This document shows, piece after piece, positions 17,447 through 64,000 of a stretch of 64,000 nt of DNA. Every line of letters begins with the position of its first letter. Within the stretch, counting starts at the first letter, position 1. The stretch comes from Podarcis erhardii. Lineage: Eukaryota. The position numbers and the translations under genes were made by a program. A model generated the notes under the pieces. It was given only the letters and a program-made list of their open reading frames with translations. It did not search any database and was not told where the DNA came from. The stretch lies in NCBI GenBank assembly GCA_964252035.1, contig OZ176203.1, one strand, 5' to 3'.

Positions 17447-20400
17447 CTACGAAAGAAAAGAGAATCATTAAAAACAAAAACCATGAGGCATTAGTTTGAC
17501 CCTCAAATATGCTCCAATAAGTTCAATTTTTAAATTTACTAGAAAGCATATCACAGAAGCACCTATGTTGAGATTAACTTTCAATTTGAATAAGTTTGAT
17601 CCACCAGCCCTATTGAACAAAGGTATAATTCTAAACAAAAACCTTGAAAATTAACTTTATCATTTCCTTTAGAAAGTAAGACTAACATATCTATCAACAT
17701 CTCTAAAGAGATTAGTGCTTGCTGTGTTCTTAACTCTGTTCTGCCAAATAGCGCTAGTTACTTTAGCCTATGAAGTACTGCTTATTATTCTATCTAGCTC
17801 TTTACTTTGATTTGCCCTGTGAGACAGTCAGCGCTTTCCGTTTTTAACATTAGAATGACTGAGAAATAGGATTTTGTGGAATTGGCTGGAATGAACAATT
17901 CCCAATATTCTTTGCTTCAGGTATTTAAGTATACAGTTGACTTGCAATTTGCATTATTGCAGTTTTACAAACTTGATGGCAGGTCAACAGACATAGCATT
18001 AATTAAATGCACACAAAGTGGAAAGCTTAAGTTCTTTTGCTGTGGAAAGAGCTTTTAAGCTCTCAGGCTTGTTTACCGGCCTCAGGGAAGGTCTCAGATG
18101 GGCTCTGGATCTCGCTGGAACTTCCCAGAGCCCATGCAAGACCCTCCCAGAGCCAAGTAAGGAAAGCGGACAAAGCCCACTTCTCACACTGGCTTAAAAA
18201 AAAAAAAGGTAGCCATGGTCATGCAGGGGTGGTTCCAGGGCTGTTCTGACTATGCATGGTTTCAACTTTAGGCACAACCCACCGTGCCCCCTCCCCCCAG
18301 CGCGACTGCTACACAGGTTGTGTGTATTTACACTGCATATTTAAAATGCAAAGAGCTTCAAGTTGACAAACATCCCTCTTGCATAGATTCCAGAAAACAA
18401 ACACAAAAAAGGTTCAATGTAGCATTGTGGACATTTTCAAAGAAAAATGGAACTCTTCAGCCTAGATCCTGCTAACTCTCCAAAGTAAGCACAGTGGAGA
18501 AGTAAAAGAAATCAAGACTAAGGACTGCCTATTTCCGTATGCAAACCTACTCCAAGAACTAGTGATCTCAATCCTCTCTTCTAATTTGGTGACATCATTC
18601 TCATTCATACTCAGCAGTGGCTGGTGAGGTGAGGTGACTCGCCGTGAAAAACTGCCATTGCACTCTGACAGAGGGCTGAGAGTGATTTCCTTTCCTTACA
18701 CTTTTTGTGCTGGTAGACAGTGACACATCCTTCAATATGCAAATACCTGGTGATGAATGTGGCACCCTACTCCCATCTCCCAGTGCCAAGAAGAGCAGGA
18801 GTTCCCTTTTCTGCTCCCATACACTGTCTACCAGCAGCTTCACCTACCTGACACACTGGCTGTTGCTATTCAGACTACTTTCAGAACCCTAACCCATGTG
18901 GACTTCCACTTAAAGAGCTCTCTGCAACTGGTTGGCTTTCCAGCAGGGGTTGGGTTAACTTTTTTCAGCATTTCATCCTGGGTAACTTTTTTCAGCATTT
19001 CATTCCAGGGACCACACACCACCACTGTCTATGTCCAGAGGCAAAAGGCTTTCCTCTCACATGGTCCTTACAACCTGGTCACATTATGAGCAGCACAAGA
19101 GAATTTATTTTTGCTCAAATGCACCATTTGCCTCTTCTTTCATCTATGTTTCAGAAAACATACATGTATGCCAAGCGGCTTCACAATATTTAAATTGCTT
19201 GTGTTGGTATGTACAATGTTGAAAAATAATGTCTGATCTGTTTTACATTAGGGTACTAAGAACAGATTTTTTTACCCTATTGTTCCCAATGAAAGAATGT
19301 GCTGAACTCTACTGACCGCTCCAGTGATGTAAATGATAAAAGCCCCAGCACAGCCATCCAATGAGAAAATGCTAAGCCAGACGCCGGTATTATTTCAATG
19401 GAACAGAGATTCCCCACTAGGCTTTACAATAAAGGATGTAAAGCACTCCTGTGGGTGGAAATAAAGCACTATCCTGATTTACTAATTACAGAGAAATCCT
19501 GTAGTTCAGAGTTTTCTCTAATAATAAGACACATACAACAGAAAAGGGGGAAAGCTTCATTCAGTACCCTATTGAACACTGAAGCCACTTCACAGATTAG
19601 AAAACACAAAGCTTAAGAGACAGGTTCATTATCTCACGGTTCACGCAACAAGCTCTGCTAAGTTTTCAAGAGATCTACATCCCTCCGGCCACAGTAATTT
19701 GGGGGAAGGGAAAGCACGCATGACACTTATTTTAAGAATCCCTCCTTGATTACCACACAGCAAATTAGCTAACTGTGGACATAAGACTCATTCTTCTTCA
19801 AGGGGGTCCCATCCCTGCCCAGTGTCTTGGAAAGAGATGGCAATCAGAACAGACCCATCTCCCCCAGGTGCTCCAGCCCAGCCCAGAATGGCGCATGCCT
19901 ATGTAAACAAAGAATGACAAAACTTAGAACAACACAGGAACATTGCAGCTGAGGTCATTTTTGTTGCCAACATAAGCAGTATTTAGAGCTACTGTATCTA
20001 CCGATTAGTTTGCTATATAATGTTGCCCAACTTACCACAAACTACTGTACTCAGGTACAGCCAACTACAGTACCCCTCATCTGACCCTCCCCTGTAAATC
20101 TAATGGGAGGGTTGCACCTCCTGAGCCCGTCCCTATAGAAAAGGGAACTGCGACCCCCCAAACCCTTTCCACCCAGGGACGACTGTGGGCAGGATTCATG
20201 CACTGCAGGGGGTGGAACTAGATGGCCCTTGGGAATTCCTTTCCAACCCTACAATGCTACGGCTCTATTCCATTCTACATTTGTCCCAAGGGGTAGTTCA
20301 GCCAGGAAAGCATGAGATTCTTCATCTCAGGGTTGTGGGTTCGAATCCTCCCCCCCCCAAGGTGGGTGAAAAGACTCCTGCATTGCAGGGGGTCGGAATG

Positions 20401-20908
20401 GATGATCCTCGTGGTCCTTTTCCAACAGTTCCATCCTATTAATCTAAGGGCTTGGTCGAGGAGGCCATGGTGGCTCCAGCCTGGGGCGCTTATCTCCACG
20501 ACCAGGGTCAGGTTTGAGGTGGAGAACGAGGAAAAGGAAATAGAAAAGAGAGGGGGGGCAAAGGAGAATAGTGAGAAATCGTGACCAGCACTAGAAATGT
20601 GGGATCGCGCATTAAAAAAATAAAATAAAAATCAGGGGACGTGGAAGGGGAAAAGGTCAGGGTGGATGGGATGGGGAGGCCCATGTTTAGAGAGAGGGAA
20701 CACGGGGGCCGGATTTCCCAAGCTGAAAGAGGAGAAAAGAGGTAAGAGCCGGTGCGAGGCGGAGGTGCCGCCCGGGGGGGGGGAGGGCGGTTGGTGGCCG
20801 AAACGCCCCCCAGCCAACGGCTTTAACGGCCGCCGGCGCCGTCTGTGGAGATTCCGGCCGGAGCACGTGGGCCCCGCCAGGGCCGCCCCGCCCGCGCGCG
20901 CACGCCGA

Positions 20909-20940
<32 letters not shown>
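20909..20940. repeat. (AC)n microsatellite in IPO5 intron 1
   Basis: Direct inspection. Confidence 0.95.
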
Positions 20941-20943
<3 letters not shown>

Positions 20944-21067
20944 CGCTGGGAGGCTGACAGGGCAAGGCCGGGTCCGGAGAGCGCGGTCGGGCGAGGCTGG
21001 AGCCGGCGGGAAAGGGAGAGCGGGGAACCGGGGGGGGGGTACGAAACAACGCGAAGCCGCCAGTCAC

Positions 21068-21169
21068 CTCGGCCTGTTTCCGGACGACATTGTCCGGGCT
21101 GAGCAGGTTGCCTAGGAGAAGATAGAACTGCTGCTGCTCCTGCTCCGCCGCCGCCGCCGCCGCCGCCAT
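21068..21169 (-). CDS. IPO5: Importin-5 coding exon 1 ([34 protein letters not shown])
   Basis: ATG at 21169 in a GCC-rich Kozak context; matches the known IPO5 N-terminus; donor GAG|gtgact; 102 nt. Confidence 0.97.
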
Positions 21170-22004
21170 GGCTGCCTGAGAGAGAGAGAGAGGCCAGCCG
21201 GGCAGGGAGGAGGGAGGAGGGAGGCAGGAGGCGGGGTCTCCAGGCCGCGCACCGACCACAGGGAGGCGGAGCCGCCGCCGCCGCCGCGCTTCTGATGAAC
21301 TTCTCCCCGCCCCTGCCGGCAACACAGACGCCCCCTCCCTACCGCCCGCCTCCTGCCGACGCCGGGCTGCTGCTGCGGCGCTCCCATTGGGTGCAGGGCG
21401 AAAGGCGGCCTTGCTCCCATTGGGCCGCGGCCCAGCCGCCTTTGTGATTGGGCGGGAAAGCGCCATTGTGAAGTCACTTCCCTCTCGCCTCCCTTAGTCC
21501 GTCTCCCCCTCCCTTGCGGGAGGGGCGGGAGGAGGGAAGCGGTTTGCTTCATCGAGCTGGGCGCCCATTGGCGGGAGGCCCTGGCAGAGGTTCTCTGACT
21601 GGGCGGGAAAACAGTCGGGCGGCCAATAAGGAGGGAGTGGGGGGCGGGGGAGAGAGTAGGAAAAAGGCGGGAGAGTGTGAGGGGACTTGGCCGGCGGGAA
21701 AAGGCCGGCGCGTTGCTCCTGATCTTCGTTGTGCGAAGCGAGCGCGTCGGCTTTGTGTTGTGACCTTACCGCCCCGAGTAGGAAATACTGTGTCCTATAA
21801 GCACAGACCCTCCAAGTGCCCCTATTTTTCCAGAAACCGTTGCGGTTTCTGATCTGCCCCGCTTTTCCTTAGGACGTCCCAGTTTTCATCCGAGAGATGC
21901 TGGAGGTTATGGTAGGACGTCCCTATTTTCCATATTTTCATCGGAGAAATGTATACGAGTTATGCGACCTCCCCTAGCCAAGGAGACGAGTAACTATACA
22001 GCCT

Positions 22005-26790: not shown

Positions 26791-27451
26791 CATAAAGAAT
26801 AATAATTTAAAACCGGACAACATACCGTATTTTCCCGTCTATAAGAATAGTGTTGTTTTTTTTTCTTTTTAGAAAAAGCTTTAAAATTTGCCCTCGTCTT
26901 AGACATGGGTAGTACAGAGGGCGGTTGGGCAATTGGTAGCAGCCGCGAGCAGGAGATTTTCTGCAGTGACAGGGCAGGTGATTGGTGGCAGTGTGAAGGG
27001 CTGCTAGCGATTGGCTGCCTCTGTGTCAATAGCGGGTTTGATTGTCCGCGGTGGGTGAGTGATTTTTGGCAATTCCACCCCCCAAAAGCTCAATAACTCT
27101 GGGCAATCGTCCGCAAAAAAAGCTCAACAACTACTCTGTGCTATCTCCCGCCATTTTCTTAAATCGGAGTCCCCCCAAATAGGGGGCATCTTATACATGG
27201 GGGCATCCTATAGACGGAAAACTATGGTAAATAACAACAAAAAATATTGGTAGCAATTACCAGTGGCAACATTCAAACAGCACTTAGCCCAGTAATAGTA
27301 GAAAATCTAAACCCCTTTGTCTGTCATGTATCCATTATAGGTACATTCGGGAAAATGATGGCAATGCCCAACATAGATTCCTATAACTTTTTTTTCTTAG
27401 AACAAGGCGCACAGGTTCTAATATCGAAAGGGAAATCTTACATCCACATCT

Positions 27452-27642
27452 CTAGTCTTCTGGGAAATCAAGTTTTCTTTTAATTCCTGAGACCGCTTCT
27501 CTTGTTCCAGGAGAATGGTTCAATTTCTGAGGAGTCTCTGGTTCTGATAGCTGATTTCTTTTCATTGCTGGTGATTGACAGTGACCATCCAAAGGAAGAT
27601 CTGGTTTGGAATTTTCTTGGGCACCAAGTTGTATTGTACGAG
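27452..27642 (-). CDS. APOBEC-like gene, terminal coding exon (ARTIQLGAQENSKPDLPLDGHCQSPAMKRNQLSEPETPQKLNHSPGTREAVSGIKRKLDFPED*)
   Basis: aattttag|CT, phase compatible with the upstream phase-1 donors; 62 sense codons then TAG at 27454-27452; absent from the ORF track in this frame. Confidence 0.7.
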
Positions 27643-27787
27643 CTAAAATTATTTTTAAAACAACATGTTACAATCACATTTTGAACTTTGGGAAATATAA
27701 TGTTCTGTAGGCTTGCTTCTTTAAGTTTCATCAGACCCCAGTATCCAGTGGTGTCCTCCATACCAACAGCTCTTTGATCTAGTAGAG

Positions 27788-27923
27788 CAGGCATGGCCAA
27801 ACTTGGCCCTCCAGATGTTTTGGGACTACAATTCCCATCATCCCTGACCATTGGTCCTGTGAGCTAGGAATGATGGGAGTTGTAGTCCCAAAACAACTGG
27901 AGGGCCAAGTTTGGCCATGCCTG
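27788..27923. mobile_element. 136-bp hAT MITE with 8-bp TSD in an APOBEC-like gene intron
   Basis: caggcatggccaaac TIRs; TSD tagtagag. Confidence 0.9.
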
Positions 27924-28039
27924 TAGTAGAGTGTTCTCTCAGTGTAACTCCCTGCAACACCCAATGTTCCCCTAACATGAGCTCAAGAGGGTCAGGGGGA
28001 GCTGTCTGGGAGAGAGGGGAAACTGGTAAAAATTCTCAC

Positions 28040-28096
28040 CGTCCCCATTGTTCTGAGGAAAGCCATCACTGGGTCTAAGAACTGTTGTCGACTCCA
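28040..28096 (-). CDS. APOBEC-like gene, possible optional 57-nt phase 1-1 exon (VESTTVLRPSDGFPQNNGD)
   Basis: ccag|TG...G|gtgaga; frame-preserving; but the preceding intron would be only 62 nt. Confidence 0.4.
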
Positions 28097-28158
28097 CTGG
28101 ACACCACTGGATACAGCACACAGAGTTTCTATTAAATTTAATATACTGTTGACATTAC

Positions 28159-28201
28159 CTGAAATGCTGTCTGAATCAATCATTTTGTCATTTTCTTCCT
28201 C
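28159..28201 (-). CDS. APOBEC-like gene, 43-nt exon (EEENDKMIDSDSIS)
   Basis: Acceptor ttttttaccccag|GAG in phase 0 matches the main-exon donor; donor TCAG|gtaatg in phase 1 matches the terminal exon. Confidence 0.72.
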
Positions 28202-29576
28202 CTGGGGTAAAAAAACAATAACACAAGTTGGGGAAGAGGACTATAAAGAGACCACTGGTTAAGTTGAAGCATTCGTGAAGATATATGGCTAGCATAGGCT
28301 AGATCTACACAGCTATTAAAAAACACTATTTACATGCTCTGCAAAAAAACCATTGTAAAGCTCACAATTCAAAATATCATTGAGTTGCAATTTCATCTGG
28401 TGTCACTGTGTTATAACACATTTATAATGCTGTATTTTGAGTCCATAATCTCCTCTGTATGTTACCATACAACTGAATTTTACAGTATAAAATTGACTTG
28501 TTGCTGAACATTAAACAGAGTGATATAGTACACACATAAAAGCATAAATAAGCCAAGACTGTAGCACAGGGCTAGCTGACGTGAAACCCTCCAGATGTTT
28601 TGAACTACAAATCCCATCATCCTTGACTAGGGATGGGAGAGAAATTCTATTCAGTTTGCATTTAAAGGCCAATCTATCAAATTCTCACTTCGTGAAACGT
28701 AATATTACTGTAATTGTGGTAGCTCTTTTTCCAGCTGTCATTAAATTTGCTGTGGCAAAATCCATGTTGTAGGACCTGGTTCATATTAACATTTGTCCAT
28801 GCAATTCTGAACATGCATGCAGTTTAGGGTTGGCCGGTTTTGTTCATGCATAAGAAAAACAGATTGTGGGGGAGAAATTAATCTGGTTCACTTTGCTCAT
28901 CCCAAACTGATACACAAACCTAAATGTAGATTTCCTTCAACATTCCCACATATTGAAATCTGCAGTGCAATTCTCCAACAAAAAATGCATACATGGGGTG
29001 GGGGGGAATACACACAAATGAGTATATTAGTAGAAATAAAGTACAAAAATGCATTATATTAGGGGAAATGGCTTGCAAAAATGCTTATATTAGGCAAAAT
29101 AGAACAAACGCACATGGAAATGTATGGATATTGTGTGGACTTTAATTCTTTAAAAGCAAGCTGATGCACATATGGGGTGAACTGAGATAAGATTTAGAAA
29201 AATGAGAAAGTAAAACTAGCAGATTTGAACTCTCCCGTTCCAGCTCTAATCCCAGGAACCTTATTCGGCATCATTTTAGCAACACTGTATACAAGGAAAC
29301 GTGCCACTCTCAAAATGTTTCCTGTACTTTATATGAACTGCTTGCATTTAATTTATAAATAGATGCCACTCTCCAGTTCTTAGAAAACTTTAGGTACTTT
29401 ATCAGTGTTTAACACTGATAACATAATAATTTACATTCAAAGTGAAATAGATTTTCTGTTTGTGTGTGTTTCATATAAACCTGGTTGAAATTTAAGGCAA
29501 ACTAATAATAAATTTAGCAAGCTTCCAATTGTGTTGCAAAGCAAATGATAGATCTGCACCTACAGGAAATATTGTA

Positions 29577-29826
29577 CAGTCATACCTTGGAAGTCGAACA
29601 GAATCTGTTCCGGAAGTCTGTTTGACTTCCAGAATGTTTGGAAACCAAAGCGCTGCTTCTGATTGGCTGCAGGAAGCTCCTGCAGCCAATCAGAAGCCGC
29701 GGAAGCCCTGTCGGACGTTCGGCTTCCAAAAATAGTTGGCAAACTAGAACAGTCACTTCCAGGTTTGTGGCATTTGGGAGCCAAAATGTTCAAGAATTAA
29801 GCTGTTCGAAAACCAAGGTACGACTG
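29577..29826. mobile_element. Tigger-like MITE in an APOBEC-like gene intron; same family at 58316-58557; related elements at 54492-54665 and 57138-57315
   Basis: cagtcrtaccttgg TIRs; TA TSD. Confidence 0.85.
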
Positions 29827-30029
29827 TACTGTATCGGGGACAATGCAGAACCAAAAGGTTGAGAAGGGTTTTTAATCATTCTTAGAACTGAGTGGAAGTC
29901 CACTTGGTGGATTTCCCTTAGAACAAGCATTTGGAAGGCCCCCTGTCCTACAACCCAACAAAATTTGTGTATCATTTTATCATTTATGATCTGGGTCAAA
30001 GTTTTGCAATGCCTCCACCTCCCTTTTAC

Positions 30030-30609
30030 CTGTTTCAAAAGTGTGTCCAGATCATCTGCATTCTCCTTGCTTTCTTCATCCAGATTTGACCATGGCGTAA
30101 AGTTTTCTGATGGGTCTACAAATAGAGCAAAGCATTCTTCATAATCAGATTTGTTCATCATTTTAATCGAAACCCCAGAGCTCTTCAGAAGGTGTAGACC
30201 TTTTTGTTCTCCTTCTCTGTTAAAATAATATGGCCTCGAAGCTTTTATTTCCATGCATATTCCACTGTTTTTTTCCATAAAAGACTTTATCCTGACACTG
30301 CATTCATGGCAAGGGGTGTATGACACAAAAAGGTTCAGTTCATAATTTTCTTTGGTGATGTTTTCTGCGATTTGGTCTTCAATATAATCTAAAACTAAAA
30401 CTTCAGCATGCTTGCCACCAGGATCATTGTACACATAGCCCCAACTTTCCCAAATCAGGTTTTCTTCCTTTTTGAAACTAAACAATAGTAATGTTGTTTT
30501 GCGTATTTTTGTGTTGTCAAAATCTTCTTGGAAGTCTTCTTTCGGACATAGTTTTTTGAGGAAGACTGGCATTTCCTCTGACACTTCTAAACCAGAAACT
30601 TTCAAAAGG
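30030..30609 (-). CDS. AID/APOBEC-family zinc-dependent cytidine deaminase, main exon carrying the whole catalytic domain
   Basis: HAE at 30410-30402, x29 spacer, SYTPCHEC (P at 30314); downstream family-type motifs SRPYY, GLHLLKSSGVSIKMM, DYEECF, FTPW; strong acceptor tttatctttacag|C and donor CAG|gtaaaa; no stops; first in-exon ATG at 30572. Confidence 0.93.
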
Positions 30610-30721
30610 CTGTAAAGATAAAAGGGCATTTAAAGTAGAAATAGAAAAATGCTTTTGTCCATCAGAACTACAAGCACCACCCTCAACACATGGCTGGGTA
30701 GGGGGGGATTAGTTCTTCATT

Positions 30722-31070
30722 GGTAAAGGGACCCCTGACCATTAGGTCCAGTCGTGACTGACTCTGGGGTTGCGGAGCTCATCTCGCTTTATTGGCCGAG
30801 GGAGCCAGCGTACAGCTTCCGAGTCATGTGGCCAGCATGACTAAGCCGCTTCTGGCGAACCAGAGCAGCACACGGAAACGCCGTTTACCTTCCCGCTGGA
30901 GTGGTACCTATTTATCTACTTGAACTTTGACGTGCTTTCAAACTGCTTAGGTTGGCAGGAGCAGGGACGAAACAACATGAGCTTACCCCGTCACGGGGAT
31001 TTGAACCTCCAACCTTCTGATCGGCAAGTCCTATGCTCTGTGGTTTAACCCAGAGCACCACCCGCGTCCC
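30722..31070 (-). mobile_element. Sauria (Squam1) SINE, full length, in the intron upstream of the APOBEC main exon
   Basis: Reverse complement of the gggacgcggg...ccctttacc consensus. Confidence 0.9.
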
Positions 31071-31576
31071 TTACTGACCTTCAAAATGTGTGGGTAGTTG
31101 AGAGGCCAACTGACAGTACCCCCATTTACAGGGGCCAGCGGAGAGCCCCCAAAAGTCAAGGAAGGGGCAGGGCTGAGCCAGTCTCACATCTGTGGCATGA
31201 CTGCATTGGACCCCAATTCAGGTCCACTTGTCCCACCCAACCACCTTCCACCATAACTGCAATGAGTGGCAGAGTTGTCGATGCAACTGTGGCTCTGTTG
31301 CTCCACAAATCCCCCCCGTAGGTAGCAGGAGTTGGGACTGCACTCAAAGTGCCCATTCTAACCTGAGAGTCCCATTGAACTAAGAGTGACTTACTACTGA
31401 GTAAACATGATTAAGGCTACATTGTAAGAGGTCCTTTCTAATAAAGTGCTGTACTGTATTGTTTTGGATGCCAGCTAAAAATGTTTTGTTAGGCAAGCCT
31501 GCTCAGACATGTAATTTTGTTTTGTGTATTTGTTTTAAAAATCAATTTTATTTATATCTTGATAACCTTTATGTCT

Positions 31577-31935
31577 GGAACGTGGGTGGGTGGCGCTGTG
31601 GGTTAAACCACAGAGCCTAGGGCTTGCCAATCAGAAGGTCATGGTTTGAATCCCCGTGACAGGGTGAGCTCCTGTTCCTCAGTCCCTGCTCCTGCCAACC
31701 TAGCAGTTCAAAAGCATGTCAAAGTGCTAGTAGATAAATAGGTACCGCTCTGGCGGGAAGGTAAACGGTGTTTCCATGCACTGCTCTGGTTCGCCAGAAG
31801 TGGCATAGTCATGCTGGCCACATGACCCGGAAGCTGTATGCCGGCTCCCTCGGCCAATAAAGCGAGATGAGCGCCGAAACCCCAGAGTTGTCCGCAACTG
31901 GACCTGATGGTCAGGGGTCCCTTTAACTTTACCTG
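31577..31935 (+). mobile_element. Sauria SINE with 12-bp TSD
   Basis: TSD acctttatgtct at 31565-31576 and 31936-31947. Confidence 0.92.
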
Positions 31936-31948
31936 ACCTTTATGTCTA

Positions 31949-32428
31949 CAGTAGTACCTTGGTTCTCAAACTTAGTCCGTTCCAGAAGTCCATTCCAAAA
32001 CCAAAGCCTTCCAAAACCAAGGCACGCTTTCCAATAGAAAGAAATGCAAAACGGATTAATCCATTCCAAACTTTTAAAAACAACCCCTTAAACAACAATT
32101 TAACATGAATTTTACTAACGAGACCATTGATCCACAAAATGATAGCAATAAACAATGTACTGCATTCACACAAACAATCAGTAGCTGAACTGGGTTCCAC
32201 ACAGTCACAAAAACAAAACAAAAAGAGCTGCAAAAACAAAAACGCAAAATAAATAGCAGAAACAGACAGACCTCAGCGTAAAACTCAAATCGAAAGCATA
32301 ACACTCAAAACAGAGCATGTTCAGCTTCTAAAAAAGGTTCACAAACCGGAACACACACTTCCAGGTTTGCAGTGTATGGGTTCCAAGTCATTTGAGTACC
32401 AAGGCGTTTGAGAACCAAGGTACCACTG
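31949..32428. mobile_element. Tigger-like non-autonomous DNA transposon
   Basis: cagtrgtaccttggttctcaaac TIRs; TA TSD. Confidence 0.85.
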
Positions 32429-34261
32429 TACATGCTTTTAACGTTTGATTTGATGGGCATTTTAAAATGAAGATTCTATATTGTTTTCTGTAAACAGCTT
32501 GGAGGTTTTGTTGATTAAGCTGCATATGCATCTTGTTAAATAATAAATAAAATTAAAATGTATATGTAAAATTGATCTCAACTAGCCACATCCTTTTCTA
32601 GCTGGCTTTAGTTATCCAGCTGTCCTGGCTATTGCTTCTACCTTCTCTGTTGGGTATCTTTCCAAACAGAAGAAGACTTTTGGGGAAGTGAGAGCAGCAC
32701 AGAGGCAGCCCCACCCTAAAAAGTATCTCTTTGTGACTCAAATGGTACTGCTCGAACCACAATTCTTAATGTTTAATTAAGCCAAAATGAATTTATAGAG
32801 TACCAGAAGAAACGCTGCCACGCAACATGCTAGATGTGTTAACTTCAATATATTCATATAAATTGTGTCTTGCTCATTAGAAAGTGGGAGTTGGGGGGAT
32901 ATAAATGGCAGCAATGTGATTGAATTGGCTGGCAGAGAGGACAACCCTCTTTTATGGCCATCTGCAGGGCTAGCTTAGTCTGTGCAGACCATGTTGTTGT
33001 TGTTTTGTTGTTCTTGTTGTTCTTGTTAATTGAGCGCTCACTCCCACCAGAGCCACACAATCACTTCCAAAATGCTTCCATGCTATTTGTGCTATTTTGG
33101 AACCCACTTGTTTTGCCTAAGGTTGGAGACAAATTTGGATTTTACCTTTTTTTAAAAGGAGAGATGGACCATTGTGTATTTCTATCTGACGTTTAGAAGA
33201 CATCTGAAGGCAGCCCTGTATAGGGAAGTTTTTAATGACTGATCCTTTGTTGGAAGCTGCCCAGAGTGGGCAAGGTATAAATGAACTACTACTACTACTA
33301 TTGTATTTCTTCAGTCCAGCAGTCTTATGTGCAATCTGAAACCTGCACGCACCCCATACTGAAATCTGTTTTGAATGATGGCTGCCTCTCCTCTTTCCCA
33401 TGTTCCATTTTTTGACTCAAGTTTATTACTGTCTAGCCTGATTAAGAGTTCTGGAGAACTCTAAAGCTTGCCATCTATTCTGTGACATTTTTGTTGACTT
33501 AATAAAATAATTGCCGTCATATGGATTTTAGAATACATCAGCTGTGTTTCCAGAACAATAATGCACAAATACGTTATAAATAGCTTGGTTGGGAGTGAGG
33601 ACAGCAGATACAATAAAAGTTCTGTCGGCTCTTCTAAAAAGAAAACAAGCGAACAAGTTGAGAAGACAGTCAAATCACATTCCAGACTTGAATCCCCAGT
33701 CATCCTATTTACACATTACATATTCCACCGCATGTAAACTTACCAAAATATGTGCACTTACGTTATTATTTAAGCCAGGTTTTTATGACATTTTTAGAAG
33801 CAGCTCTTGAGATACAGCCATGTTTTTCAGTTTGGGTTTTCCAGGAGATAAAGAAGTAAAACTTTATCCACAATGCCACCTGGTGGCATTTTAAAAAATT
33901 GTTAAATATTTTTTTTCACTGCCCTGGTAGCTTATTTGCTATAAGGGCAGACTTAGCTAAGCCTTGGGCTTCATGTGCCCTGGTAATGTTAATCAACTAA
34001 CTCTTTCCCCTTCTAGAGATTTCAAGTCAAGATCTTGCCGCTTCTCTCATGAAGGCTGTTGGTCTCTCCCTATCTGGATACCTTCTCACAGAGGGAGGAT
34101 CTTAAGCATCTGCTAGGGACATGTCATGAATATACATGTATTCTCACTATATATAGTGTTTGGGAAGAGCGAATAAATGAAGAGAGGAGTAGAGTAATTG
34201 CTTGCTATAAATGTATATTCAGTTCAGTGTGTGCACTGTGGATACCACTTATAAAAACCAC

Positions 34262-35980: not shown

Positions 35981-36800
35981 TGTCGAGAGTGGGAGAACAA
36001 GAAAAAGCATCCTGCATTCCCATCAGCCATTGGCCGAGTGTTTAGGTGCGGTTGGAGAGTCAATGGAATGTGGAGAGAGCGCAGAGGAGATTCCAGAGAG
36101 ATCAGAGATGTTCAGAGAGAGTTTGGAGAAATGCAGGGGAGCCCAGGGAGAGTTGTGGAGGAGGTTTGTCAGGGAACTGCCATCGGAGCTAGAGGGACAG
36201 GGAGGGCTCCAGAGGGGTTCAGGAGAGCGTCCCGGGAGGGAGAGAAGCAGCCCATCTGCTGGGGAAGGAATTCAGTGTAGCACCAGTGGAGAAGGGGGGC
36301 AGATGGGGGAATCGGCGAGGTGGCTCCATGACTCCTCACGGGAGACCAGCGGGGAGAGCACGGGTCCTCCGCTGCCCACACCCTCCCTGCGCAGAAGACT
36401 TCCGCGCAGGGAGATTAGGCGGAGACTAGGCATCAAAGAGCTTCTTTGCTGGAAGAAGTTCAAGAAACGCCCACTGACGGATTCTGCCAGTGATTGAGAC
36501 AGCCATGGGTGAGAGGCTGTCCAGACAGAAAGGGTTCACCCAGGTAACCTAGCTAGGTGTGGTGTCGATTTACGCACGAGCAACCCCTAGAACCACTACA
36601 AGGTTGAAGAGTCATTGGAGGAGACTGGAGGGATTTGCGGAGGAGATGGAGAGAGTCGTGGAGGAGTTTTGGAGAGTCATCAGAAGAGGTTGGAGAGTGA
36701 TTGGACGATGCTGGAAAGAGTTGCAGACTGCAAAATTGCCCCAAAGTGTCATCAACAACCATGCTGCCTAACGGTCCTGATTTTACCAGGACATCCTGGG
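35981..36800 (+). mobile_element. GA-rich LTR-like repeat; right boundary uncertain
   Basis: Starts tgtcga; purine-rich composition like 47251-47818. Confidence 0.4.
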
Positions 36801-37089
36801 TTTACAGAAGCTTCTGAAAGTAATCCTAGATGCCCTGTTGTGGCCAACACCGTCACTGCTGCGCTATGGCCTCCCTGCAGGGGGTGGTGCAGCCTAGGAC
36901 CGAGGCTGCTGGCTTTTCCGATGATGCACCTCCAGTGCGCTGAAGTCTTTGCCTCCTCTGCTGTGCCACAGCCTCTGCCTGCAGCTGCAGACCACAGGCC
37001 ACAGAGGGTGGTGGAGAGAGGGAGAGAGATGCCCAAAGTAAGGTACCGGGGTGTTGTGGGATGCCCCGAATTCCTCTTGGGAAATGCTG

Positions 37090-37300
37090 GAACATACACA
37101 TCAACTGCTGAAAACCCAAAGAAGCAAAGAGTGGTTCCCATGATTTAAGAGAAAGTGGCTGTGCTGGATTGATTGAGGGGTGACATCCTGCTTTGAGTCC
37201 AGCATCCGTGTGCTGTCTTGGTGTGCAAGAAGGAAATCTGTGGGGCTGCAACAGAGAGCGCATCACTAACTGCAGCCGGCTGCAGGACAAAGCTTGGGTG
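37090..37300 (+). pseudogene. Decayed Tigger/pogo transposase N-terminal fragment
   Basis: PKKQRVVPMI*EKVAVLD* resembles the Tigger PKKQRKVMTLQEKVELLD motif. Confidence 0.4.
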
Positions 37301-37594
37301 TCTCTGGTTCAGGTTTGGACCCCTGGAGAACTGCAGCCAGTCATTGTAGACCAGGCTTCCTCAACCTCGGCCCTCCAGATGTTTTTCACCTACAACTCCC
37401 ATGATCCCTAGCTAGCTGGACCAGTGGTCAGGGATGATGGGAATTGTAGTCTCAAAACATCTGGGGGGCCGAGGTTGAGGAAGCCTGTTTCTACATACAT
37501 TGGACATACTGGCATGAAGGCATCACACTTGATAGTGTCTTCTGCCCAAATGGAGCATCATGTTGGATGTGCTGCTGTGACATCTCATAGAATA

Positions 37595-38224
37595 CGTTGT
37601 AAGAAAAACTGCTCCCTTTCCCTTTCCAGACCCTGTTAGAGTCCTTAAGTAGGTTTCCTATCGGTAGGAGAAAATAACAGAGGCCAACCAGAGTATATTG
37701 AGAAGCAAAGTGGCTAGTAAGCCTGATTTTTATTAAGGGAACAATTGCAACAGGGTCCCCACTCACCACATGCAGGAGGGAGGAGAACCCTGAACAATGG
37801 TGTGCAAGCCCTTATGTAGACTTTTGAAATTGCCCACCCTGTAGGCCAACACCCCCCCCCCAATAGTCATACATACATCACAGAAAGAGGTGGTCTACAG
37901 CAGAAATCCTGTCTGCCAGGATACCTGCTAATGCTCACTGACTGCATTACCTGGGCAGTCTGGCCATGCTTTTGTGATGGTAAATACTTTAGTTCCTGAA
38001 TCCAGGTCACAGGTTCACCCTATTCATACACAAATACGCCGGTAAGACAGGATTTGTCAATGGAAAAGGCAATGGGAATGCTTTCCCCATTTGCCTCCCT
38101 TACTGCAGAGGAATATTTGAGGTCATTGGGAGAGTCAAAATGGCTTCAGGATTGCTCTCCTATACTATTTCTTTGAAGACGAAGCCTGATGTCAGAGCAC
38201 ACATCAAGGCAGGAGAAAATAACA
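37595..38224 (-). mobile_element. Solo LTR, same family as 51790-52816, pointing toward the APOBEC-like gene
   Basis: About 560 bp align in reverse complement to the 51.8-52.8 kb copy and join across that copy's L2 insertion site; TSD not confirmed. Confidence 0.8.
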
Positions 38225-63424: not shown

Positions 63425-63677
63425 AACACATATATAGGAACCACATAGGGGTTTTACAAAAAGCCACAATTAGACTGGGCACTGGACCAGACAGACTTGC
63501 ACTCCAGCATGTCCACAGCATGTCCACAGCATGTCCACTGGCTGCCATATACGCTCCTCACAATGATCTCAGAGGGCCACTTGCTGTATAAATTGGCTCT
63601 GCATAAATGCCACCTTTGGGGGAGTAAATCAAAATGGCAGCGCTATCTTGGGAAGCGTTTCATCAGAGGAGCCCTAC

Positions 63678-63811
63678 CTCAGAAGTTCGCATCTGTTTGG
63701 GTCACTCGCATCGTAAAGAGCAAACTTCAGTATCCTACCAAGGTGGAGAGGAAGCCAACACACAGCGAAGACGAGCACTAAGAAGAACACGGTTCTGGCC
63801 ACTTCGCGTCT
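63678..63811 (-). CDS. EDNRB: Endothelin receptor type B, TM6/ECL3 exon (RREVARTVFFLVLVFAVCWLPLHLGRILKFALYDASDPNRCELL); upstream exons outside the window
   Basis: tttcag|AGA...AG|gtaggg; 134 nt, the size I recall for the equivalent human EDNRB exon; CWLP motif. Confidence 0.94.
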
Positions 63812-64000
63812 CTGAAAGCAAAGAAACACCCATTGAAAATGGGGAAACGGGTCATACTTAATGAAGCTGAACATTTCAATTGGAACATGATCCCTGACCA
63901 GTCTCTGCATTATGTTTCTCCTACACACACTGGCACACTTCTGGCTTCTAGCTATGAAAAAAACAAGGGCACTGGGCAAAATATTGCATGATACTTCAAA

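Follow-up and report, generated by a model that had tools for sequence, protein, structure and literature searches.

A probable APOBEC5 orthologue directly upstream of IPO5 in the lacertid lizard Podarcis erhardii

A stretch of 64,000 nucleotides (nt) of Podarcis erhardii DNA (GenBank assembly GCA_964252035.1, contig OZ176203.1), called the window below, carries a gene for a deaminase of the AID/APOBEC type. A preliminary description, made from the sequence alone, placed this gene between IPO5 and EDNRB, considered the locus unexpected, and proposed a lineage-restricted or poorly characterised enzyme; the AICDA-APOBEC1 locus was taken to lie elsewhere in amniotes, an assumption that is kept here. 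The locus raises the question of which deaminase this is, and whether it is out of place. The gene is considered, with a probability of about 0.9, to be the lacertid orthologue of APOBEC5 (A5), with three coding exons and a product of 258 amino acids (aa) that most likely deaminates C to U in single-stranded DNA (ssDNA). It is a gene of an already known kind: the family was described in 2011, 2018, 2020 and 2025, and the gene is predicted in sister species. All coordinates are positions in the window, and the A5 gene is read on the minus strand.

Gene structure, splicing and orthologous models

An open reading frame (ORF) of 279 aa on the minus strand (29790-30629) contains a complete AID/APOBEC deaminase domain. 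From the sequence, the acceptor AG at 30611-30610 sets the start of exon 1 at 30609, and the donor GT at 30029-30028 follows a CAG whose last base is 30030. The last coding exon begins at 27642 with an AG immediately before it. Joined from the Met codon at 30572, the exons (Table 1) form a coding sequence (CDS) of 777 nt with 258 codons and zero internal stops. The zinc-deaminase core was read as H55-A-E57, 29 residues, and P87-C-H-E-C91. Further family motifs are SRPYY (112-116), GLHLL...GVSIKMM (125-139), DYEEC (143-147) and FTPW (158-161). The intact, phase-correct multi-exon gene of the preliminary description is confirmed by the open CDS, the splice sites and the Pfam matches, and the zinc ligands and catalytic Glu are retained (H55, E57, C88, C91); the motifs, acceptor, donor and exon joins that it listed are each present where it had placed them. 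Of its size estimate of 258-277 aa, the lower value agrees with the CDS, the contigs and the orthologue models; nothing was found in support of a 277-aa variant.

Expression was assessed by placing contigs from four small transcriptome-like public runs on positions 27000-32900. X1 record 2 (1029 nt) and X5 record 25 (1176 nt), contigs that each come from a different study, cover 30029-30565 and 30029-30606, respectively. In both, exon 1 is followed by 42 unplaced letters, after which the match resumes exactly at 27642 and extends to about 27190. The 42 letters correspond to the predicted 43-nt exon 2, because one base at the exon 1/2 join fits either side. A contig from a third run (X12 record 9) has 55 letters before 27642, matching exon 2 and the end of exon 1. 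Both predicted junctions, 30030>28201 and 28159>27642, are thus confirmed by spliced contigs of a close relative, and the spliced form is hard to explain other than as RNA. In exon 1 the contigs and the window diverge by about 4-5%, and the contigs were therefore assigned to related species and not to the window's own. They give no expression level, tissue or transcript ends. A search of sequencing runs found no run recorded as RNA, and the runs holding the window at 0.95 look like DNA.

The X5 contig carries 107 extra 5' letters that find no place within 27000-32900, so that one or more untranslated 5' exons must lie further upstream. At the 3' end, a high-copy interspersed repeat starts where the transcript contigs stop, near 27190, and no AATAAA was found just before the contig ends at 27190-27192. 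Very high summed contig depth with many chimeric joints was seen in all four runs at 27788-27984, 29561-29757, 30546-31136 and 31531-32121. These intervals are interspersed repeats, similar to short interspersed nuclear elements or other transposable elements, in the A5 introns and the upstream region.

The NCBI-predicted proteins of Podarcis muralis and Zootoca vivipara (P0001 and P0002, the latter XP_034971739.1) have 258 aa and two exon joins identical to those of the window gene, and the residues of exon 2 recur in both. The deaminase exon is 91% identical to the P. muralis model, with 16 replacements in 181 domain residues, which is many for close relatives, and 77% identical to the Z. 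vivipara model. These proteins are named 'DNA dC->dU-editing enzyme APOBEC-3G-like' (P. muralis) and 'APOBEC-1-like' (Z. vivipara); the names are misleading and file lacertid A5 under the wrong subfamilies. At the Lacerta agilis locus all four splice sites and the exon lengths are kept, and exon 2 is 95% identical. In the annotated L. agilis protein P0003 (222 aa) the donor of exon 2 is not used: translation continues into the intron (L001:12323-12457), and the KRKL tail is missing. This short model is probably an annotation or isoform artefact, since the canonical exon 3 is intact at the locus (L001:12896-13086).

Family assignment, fold and C-terminal tail

A phmmer search against 1.84 billion representative sequences returned 254 matches, several of which are near full length (254-273 aa) and align through the tail. 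A careful maximum-likelihood tree was computed with IQ-TREE from 75 rows, with long-branch and near-duplicate rows left out; the clades were named after the names retrieved for their representatives. APOBEC2 and APOBEC4 are not represented, as they did not occur in the top 150 single-domain hits. The window protein falls into a clade of 28 rows, separated from APOBEC1-like proteins, AID, A3Z1, A3Z2 and A3Z3 at 100/99. Members of the clade are squamates, the marsupials Sarcophilus harrisii (XP_003765824.1) and Monodelphis, Xenopus laevis, Phyllobates, the shark Heptranchias, and the ray-finned fishes Polypterus/Erpetoichthys and Lepisosteus. Within it, the window protein groups with Podarcis (100/97), then with lacertids (100/100), then with squamates (98/96). 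In 27 sequences of the A5 clade, no variation was seen at H55, A56, E57, P87, C88 and C91, and hardly any at N49, W44, G45 and S84.

The clade was identified as APOBEC5 on the basis of the residue numbering of devil A5, the identity of UA2, the taxon range of NAD1 and the NAD1 score of the opossum protein. A5 is reported to have been first described by Severi et al. (2011), and a report from the anole dates from the same year. The characterisation in marsupials (Tian et al. 2025, preprint, bioRxiv 10.1101/2025.05.21.655229) took the already reported A5 of the Tasmanian devil as the starting point of its search, numbered H55, E57, C89, C92, 239PxK and 256KRKL; the start of HxE (55), PxK (239) and KRKL (256) in the Sarcophilus protein P0014 match this numbering exactly. 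Marsupial UA2 is stated to be opossum APOBEC5 (Ito et al. 2020), and NAD1 is reported from ray-finned fishes, coelacanth, amphibians, lizards and marsupials, with losses in eutherians and archosaurs (Krishnan 2018, PMC5889660). The opossum protein is best matched by the Pfam NAD1 model. From these four lines we infer that NAD1 and A5 are the same family; an explicit statement to this effect was not found in the literature searched.

Pfam models of AID/APOBEC families match the window ORF with E-values from 1e-42 to 1e-10. The window protein scores 146 bits for APOBEC2 (PF18772), 134 for NAD1 (PF18778; cut-off 27), 103 for NAD2 and 100 for APOBEC_N, whereas the order of the first two is reversed in opossum A5 (NAD1 164, APOBEC2 131). 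Pfam alone is thus ambiguous as to the subfamily, which was settled by the tree, the tail motif, the exon structure and the synteny. Newer precomputed Pfam lists omit PF18778 and rename PF18782 and PF08210; family names taken from these models are unreliable for A5.

The window protein has every residue named in the A5 Z-domain consensus of the literature, HAEx3Lx24SxSPCxxCx6Fx17Yx10LxxLx3GVx4M, in the same sequence, with SYT where the consensus has SxS. Two spacers differ in length: the first has 22 residues instead of 24, and that from Y to L has 9 instead of 10. Small departures are allowed, because the consensus follows an 80% rule (Tian et al. 2025). A layout of three coding exons, of which the first encodes the entire domain, is common to shark, Xenopus, Phyllobates, devil, Pogona, Sceloporus, Phrynocephalus and Lacerta. 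The use of this layout, together with the position of IPO5, as a criterion for A5 was derived in the present analysis and is not published.

Compared with A5 of devil (XP_003765824.1), opossum and Anolis carolinensis, the window gene shares the clade, the Z-domain and the arrangement of a one-exon domain followed by two small exons, and its length is similar (258 compared with 260 aa). It differs from marsupial A5 in that the domain is 35-46% identical and the two spacers are 1-2 residues shorter than in the consensus. APOBEC3 of placentals (A3Z1, A3Z2, A3Z3) resembles the window gene in its single-domain zinc deaminase architecture and fast substrate-side loops, and its antiviral role is presumed to be analogous, but it forms separate clades, lacks the KRKL tail and is 22-29% identical. 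Moreover, the A3 clades lie beyond the 100/99 branch, the window gene adjoins IPO5, and its host is a lizard, whereas APOBEC3 at its canonical locus has CBX6 and CBX7 as neighbours (Ito 2020) and is confined to placentals (Tian et al. 2025). The active-site motifs are shared with AID and APOBEC1, and the fold with AID, but both form separate clades (AID 100/100, APOBEC1-like 100/99) and have different tails, that of AID ending in its own export motif.

Residues 1-181 were modelled with AlphaFold2 from an alignment of 27 A5 sequences. The model has a predicted local distance difference test score of 92.3, a predicted template modelling score of 0.90, and the five-strand, six-helix APOBEC topology. 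Foldseek matched it to structures of APOBEC3G, C, B, A and F and of AID with template modelling (TM) scores of 0.83-0.88 at 22-29% identity; the best solved structures, those of APOBEC3 and AID, gave 0.86-0.88. In enzymes of this fold, His and two Cys hold a zinc-activated water, Glu shuttles a proton, and C is converted to U in a single-stranded polynucleotide. Residues 1-181 are accordingly predicted to adopt the canonical cytidine-deaminase fold, in which H55, C88 and C91 would bind zinc and E57 would act as the proton shuttle. The putative substrate would be cytosine in single-stranded DNA, possibly RNA, of retroelements or viruses. By analogy with the characterised members of the family, zinc-dependent C-to-U deamination of ssDNA in innate defence is the most likely function, and the candidate antiviral or anti-retroelement role of the preliminary description appears reasonable. 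Opossum and devil A5 raise the rpoB mutation frequency in the E. coli rifampicin assay, 10.3-fold for opossum, and marsupial A5 restricts HIV-1 modestly (Tian et al. 2025).

The tail of the window protein carries TPQK at 233-235, 14 residues, and KRKL at 250-253. The offset of 17 residues between PxK and KRKL is identical in devil, opossum, gar, Anolis, Sceloporus, Pogona and Phrynocephalus; the pair is kept from shark to marsupial, with a spacing that is fixed in most sampled lineages and different in Xenopus, Phyllobates and Polypterus. The pair (27455-27520) reads as S/T-P-x-K, a consensus for phosphorylation of the cyclin-dependent kinase type, followed by KRKL, which resembles a nuclear localisation signal or a cyclin-docking RxL motif. 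A5 tails are predicted to be disordered (Tian et al. 2025), and the tail of about 77 residues in the window protein is presumably so too. Its TPxK-x14-KRKL end probably controls localisation or partner binding.

This tail supports the strongest competing explanation, in which the gene is likewise an A5 orthologue but its main job is a regulated nuclear or RNA-directed role depending on TPxK/KRKL, and not antiviral mutation of DNA. Besides the conservation of the pair, the tail evolves under a lower ratio of nonsynonymous to synonymous substitution (dN/dS, omega; 0.43-0.64) than the domain, and marsupial A5 is nuclear and cytoplasmic, broadly expressed, and modest in its effect on HIV-1 (Tian et al. 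2025). However, the surface loops of the domain evolve fast, as in restriction factors, the sequence entropy of NAD1 is comparable to that of APOBEC1 and APOBEC3 (Krishnan 2018, PMC5889660), and marsupial A5 is a DNA mutator. A predominantly nuclear or RNA-directed role was judged unlikely, at roughly one chance in five.

Divergence among lacertids

Divergence at the DNA level was determined for one lacertid pair, the window and Lacerta agilis, comparing the deaminase exon (30030-30572) with the introns (27643-30029). The dN/dS values were 0.68-1.04 for the whole CDS, 0.77-1.13 for the deaminase exon and 0.43-0.64 for the tail. In the deaminase exon, the proportion of nonsynonymous differences (pN) was 0.108, compared with a divergence of 0.056 in the gene's own introns (Fisher P = 1e-4). 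As pN exceeds the intron divergence, this exon changes faster than neutral sequence and not at an equal rate. The proportion of synonymous differences (pS) was 0.129, which is also above the intron value (P = 0.004); it could reflect a locally higher mutation rate, old allelic lineages or multi-hit codons instead of positive selection. In exon 3 pN was not raised (0.044). Other non-coding blocks at the locus showed divergences from 0.046 to 0.138.

Among four lacertids, 57 of the 181 domain positions are variable. The variable sites avoid beta1, beta5 and G125-M139, are few in the catalytic helix, and cluster in loop 1, where 6 of 9 positions vary, and in the beta1-beta2 turn, where 5 of 7 do. 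The preliminary description had named a dN/dS near 1 together with frameshifts in close relatives as a sign against a working gene. The ratio is indeed near 1 in the deaminase exon; frameshifts were not found, the ORFs of all four lacertids being intact.

These data bear directly on the view that the gene is decaying or without function, with a frame left open by chance under neutral drift in lacertids. The dN/dS near 1 in the deaminase exon and the many variable positions would agree with it. The absence of damage does not: the CDS is free of insertions and deletions (indels) and of stops in all four lacertids, and against L. agilis the 777-nt CDS contains 0 indels, as opposed to 25 events in 2244 aligned nt of two introns, so that about 8.7 would be expected at the intron rate (Poisson P(0) = 1.7e-4). 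Nor does neutral drift account for a pN above the intron divergence, for invariant catalytic and core residues and fully kept Lacerta splice sites, for spliced transcripts, or for the low omega of 0.34-0.40 in the agamid pair Pogona-Phrynocephalus. Decay was rated very improbable.

With APOBEC5 as the identity of the gene, the lacertid deaminase exon may be under diversifying selection, and squamate A5 would then be a restriction factor engaged in an active arms race; this idea is put forward tentatively, with somewhat less than even odds. Replacement and silent divergence of the exon from L. agilis are both roughly double that of the introns, with frame, catalytic core and tail motif unaltered. 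The divergence pattern itself is a point beyond the literature searched.

The locus beside IPO5 and its meaning

The first exon of IPO5 was located by tblastx with the annotated IPO5 first exons of shark and Xenopus. It sits about 6.3 kb beyond the A5 stop in a CpG-rich block at 20-22 kb. In Xenopus laevis, the shark Heptranchias perlo and the agamid Phrynocephalus, the next gene lies 4.6-9.2 kb downstream of A5 on the same strand, and its product of 1093-1099 aa contains the Pfam domains TPR_IPO5 and Importin_rep_4/5/6. In L. agilis a gene for 1100 aa lies 6.2 kb downstream of A5. The peptide of the first IPO5 exon occupies the corresponding place in Xenopus, shark, Phrynocephalus, Lacerta and the window. 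In devil, Pogona, Sceloporus and Phyllobates, no IPO5 was seen in the 10 kb that follow A5, a flank too short to tell. Because the linkage occurs in shark, Xenopus and squamates, A5 followed by IPO5 is the ancestral arrangement of jawed vertebrates. A mention of this linkage was not found in the literature searched.

The preliminary description was right that the gene adjoins IPO5 and that it is none of AID, APOBEC1, 2, 3 or 4, as seen from the tree. The locus is not unexpected, since A5 immediately precedes IPO5, in the same orientation, in shark, Xenopus, Lacerta and Phrynocephalus as well, and the family is not lineage-restricted, since it spans jawed vertebrates (tree; Krishnan 2018, PMC5889660; Tian et al. 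2025). The same description had set against its proposal an already characterised orthologue at this position across amniotes, and such an orthologue largely exists: marsupial A5 has been assayed and the synteny is seen in squamates, frog and shark, but the 10-kb flanks of the marsupials are too short for IPO5.

A lineage-restricted or new deaminase paralogue, formed at or moved to an unusual squamate locus between IPO5 and EDNRB, was regarded as less probable still than decay. The tree separates the gene from the classical subfamilies, and the inconsistent names of its orthologues (APOBEC-3G-like, APOBEC-1-like, AID-like) make it appear unclassified. Against this stand orthologues with the same exons, tail motif and IPO5 neighbour in shark, frog and squamates (in marsupials, exons and tail only) and a family that was named in 2011, 2018 and 2020. 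The proposal is refuted by the A5-IPO5 loci of shark and Xenopus, and convergence is very unlikely given the clade at 100/99. Least probable of all is an APOBEC2-type gene as suggested by the top Pfam model, a ranking that recurs in Anolis and Podarcis, since the solved APOBEC2 chains score lowest of 59 AID/APOBEC matches (36-40 bits, compared with 121 for APOBEC3G), the clades for which names were retrieved, within the best 150 of 1.84 billion representatives, comprise only A5, APOBEC1-like, AID and A3, the opossum orthologue prefers NAD1, and tail and IPO5 synteny are features of A5.

Several points weigh against the identification as a functional APOBEC5. The transcript contigs come from related species, and the label 'RNA' of their runs is a guess. 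The whole-CDS dN/dS, taken alone, is also compatible with relaxed constraint. For squamate A5 (window, Anolis, Podarcis) Pfam APOBEC2 scores slightly above NAD1, and the window protein has SYTPC in place of SxSPC. Substrate and antiviral role of reptile A5 are extrapolated from marsupials and a preprint.

Table 1. Positions of the A5 exons and of the neighbouring IPO5 exon in the window
Feature	Position	Strand	Remarks
Coding exon 1 of APOBEC5	30030..30609	-	37 nt 5' leader, ATG 30572-30570, whole deaminase domain (residues 1-181)
Coding exon 2	28159..28201	-	43 nt (EEENDKMIDSDSIS plus 1 nt), AG and GT flanks
Last coding exon	27452..27642	-	Tail with TPQK, 14 residues, KRKL; stop TAG 27454-27452
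3' untranslated region, at least to here	27190..27451	-	Spliced contigs X1 record 2 and X5 record 25 reach 27192 and 27190
Part of IPO5 coding exon 1	21062..21139	-	tblastx to annotated IPO5 first exons of shark and Xenopus

The window is colinear with the L. agilis chromosome CM020419.1, with BLAST blocks that are 75-93% identical when gaps are counted and a substitution divergence of about 5-14%; the proteins of the window are closest to those of Podarcis muralis. Two GC-rich blocks were found, at 20001-22000 (0.607) and 36001-38000 (0.526). IPO5 exon 1, presumably together with its promoter, lies in the former; the latter, some 6 kb upstream of the coding exon of A5, could hold a 5' exon or promoter of A5 or another transcript. 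A Pfam scan of eight long ORFs from both blocks and elsewhere gave nothing but a weak 7tm_1 match to the exon of a rhodopsin-family G-protein-coupled receptor (63674-63979, minus strand; 22 bits, below cut-off), which carries AVCWLPLHLGRILK. A feature search with this exon returned rhodopsin-family clusters only, with scores below 0.9, and the searches did not establish its identity as EDNRB. It resembles the region around transmembrane helix 6 of human EDNRB, to which it is tentatively assigned. IPO5 and EDNRB lie far apart on human chromosome 13, so that a breakpoint of a rearrangement would be expected on the upstream side of A5.

In iguanians a second intact A5-like deaminase exon is present on the plus strand about 9.5 kb upstream of A5 (L007:2455-2964 in Sceloporus undulatus, L002:353-856 in Pogona vitticeps); HAE and PCxxC are kept and there is no stop. 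The Phrynosoma protein P0023 is the product of this second copy and is sister to all other A5 in the tree. Neither the window nor the Lacerta locus L001 has this copy, and tblastn with the window protein and the iguanian paralogue revealed no second deaminase copy within the window. The A5 preprint describes a duplication in sturgeons only (Tian et al. 2025). The second intact iguanian copy could be of use to those working on the A5 family.

For annotation, the label APOBEC5/NAD1 fits the gene, the automated names 'APOBEC-3G-like' and 'APOBEC-1-like' should go, and no new category is needed. The linkage of A5 and IPO5 offers a simple positional test of orthology and can be used for dating the losses in birds and placentals. 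A5 is a candidate stand-in for APOBEC3 in vertebrates without A3, and the unusually fast lacertid deaminase exon fits an ongoing host-parasite conflict. If diversifying selection is true, the arms race would involve an A5 within an A5-IPO5 pair that has been linked since the ancestor of sharks and tetrapods and was tandemly duplicated in iguanians.

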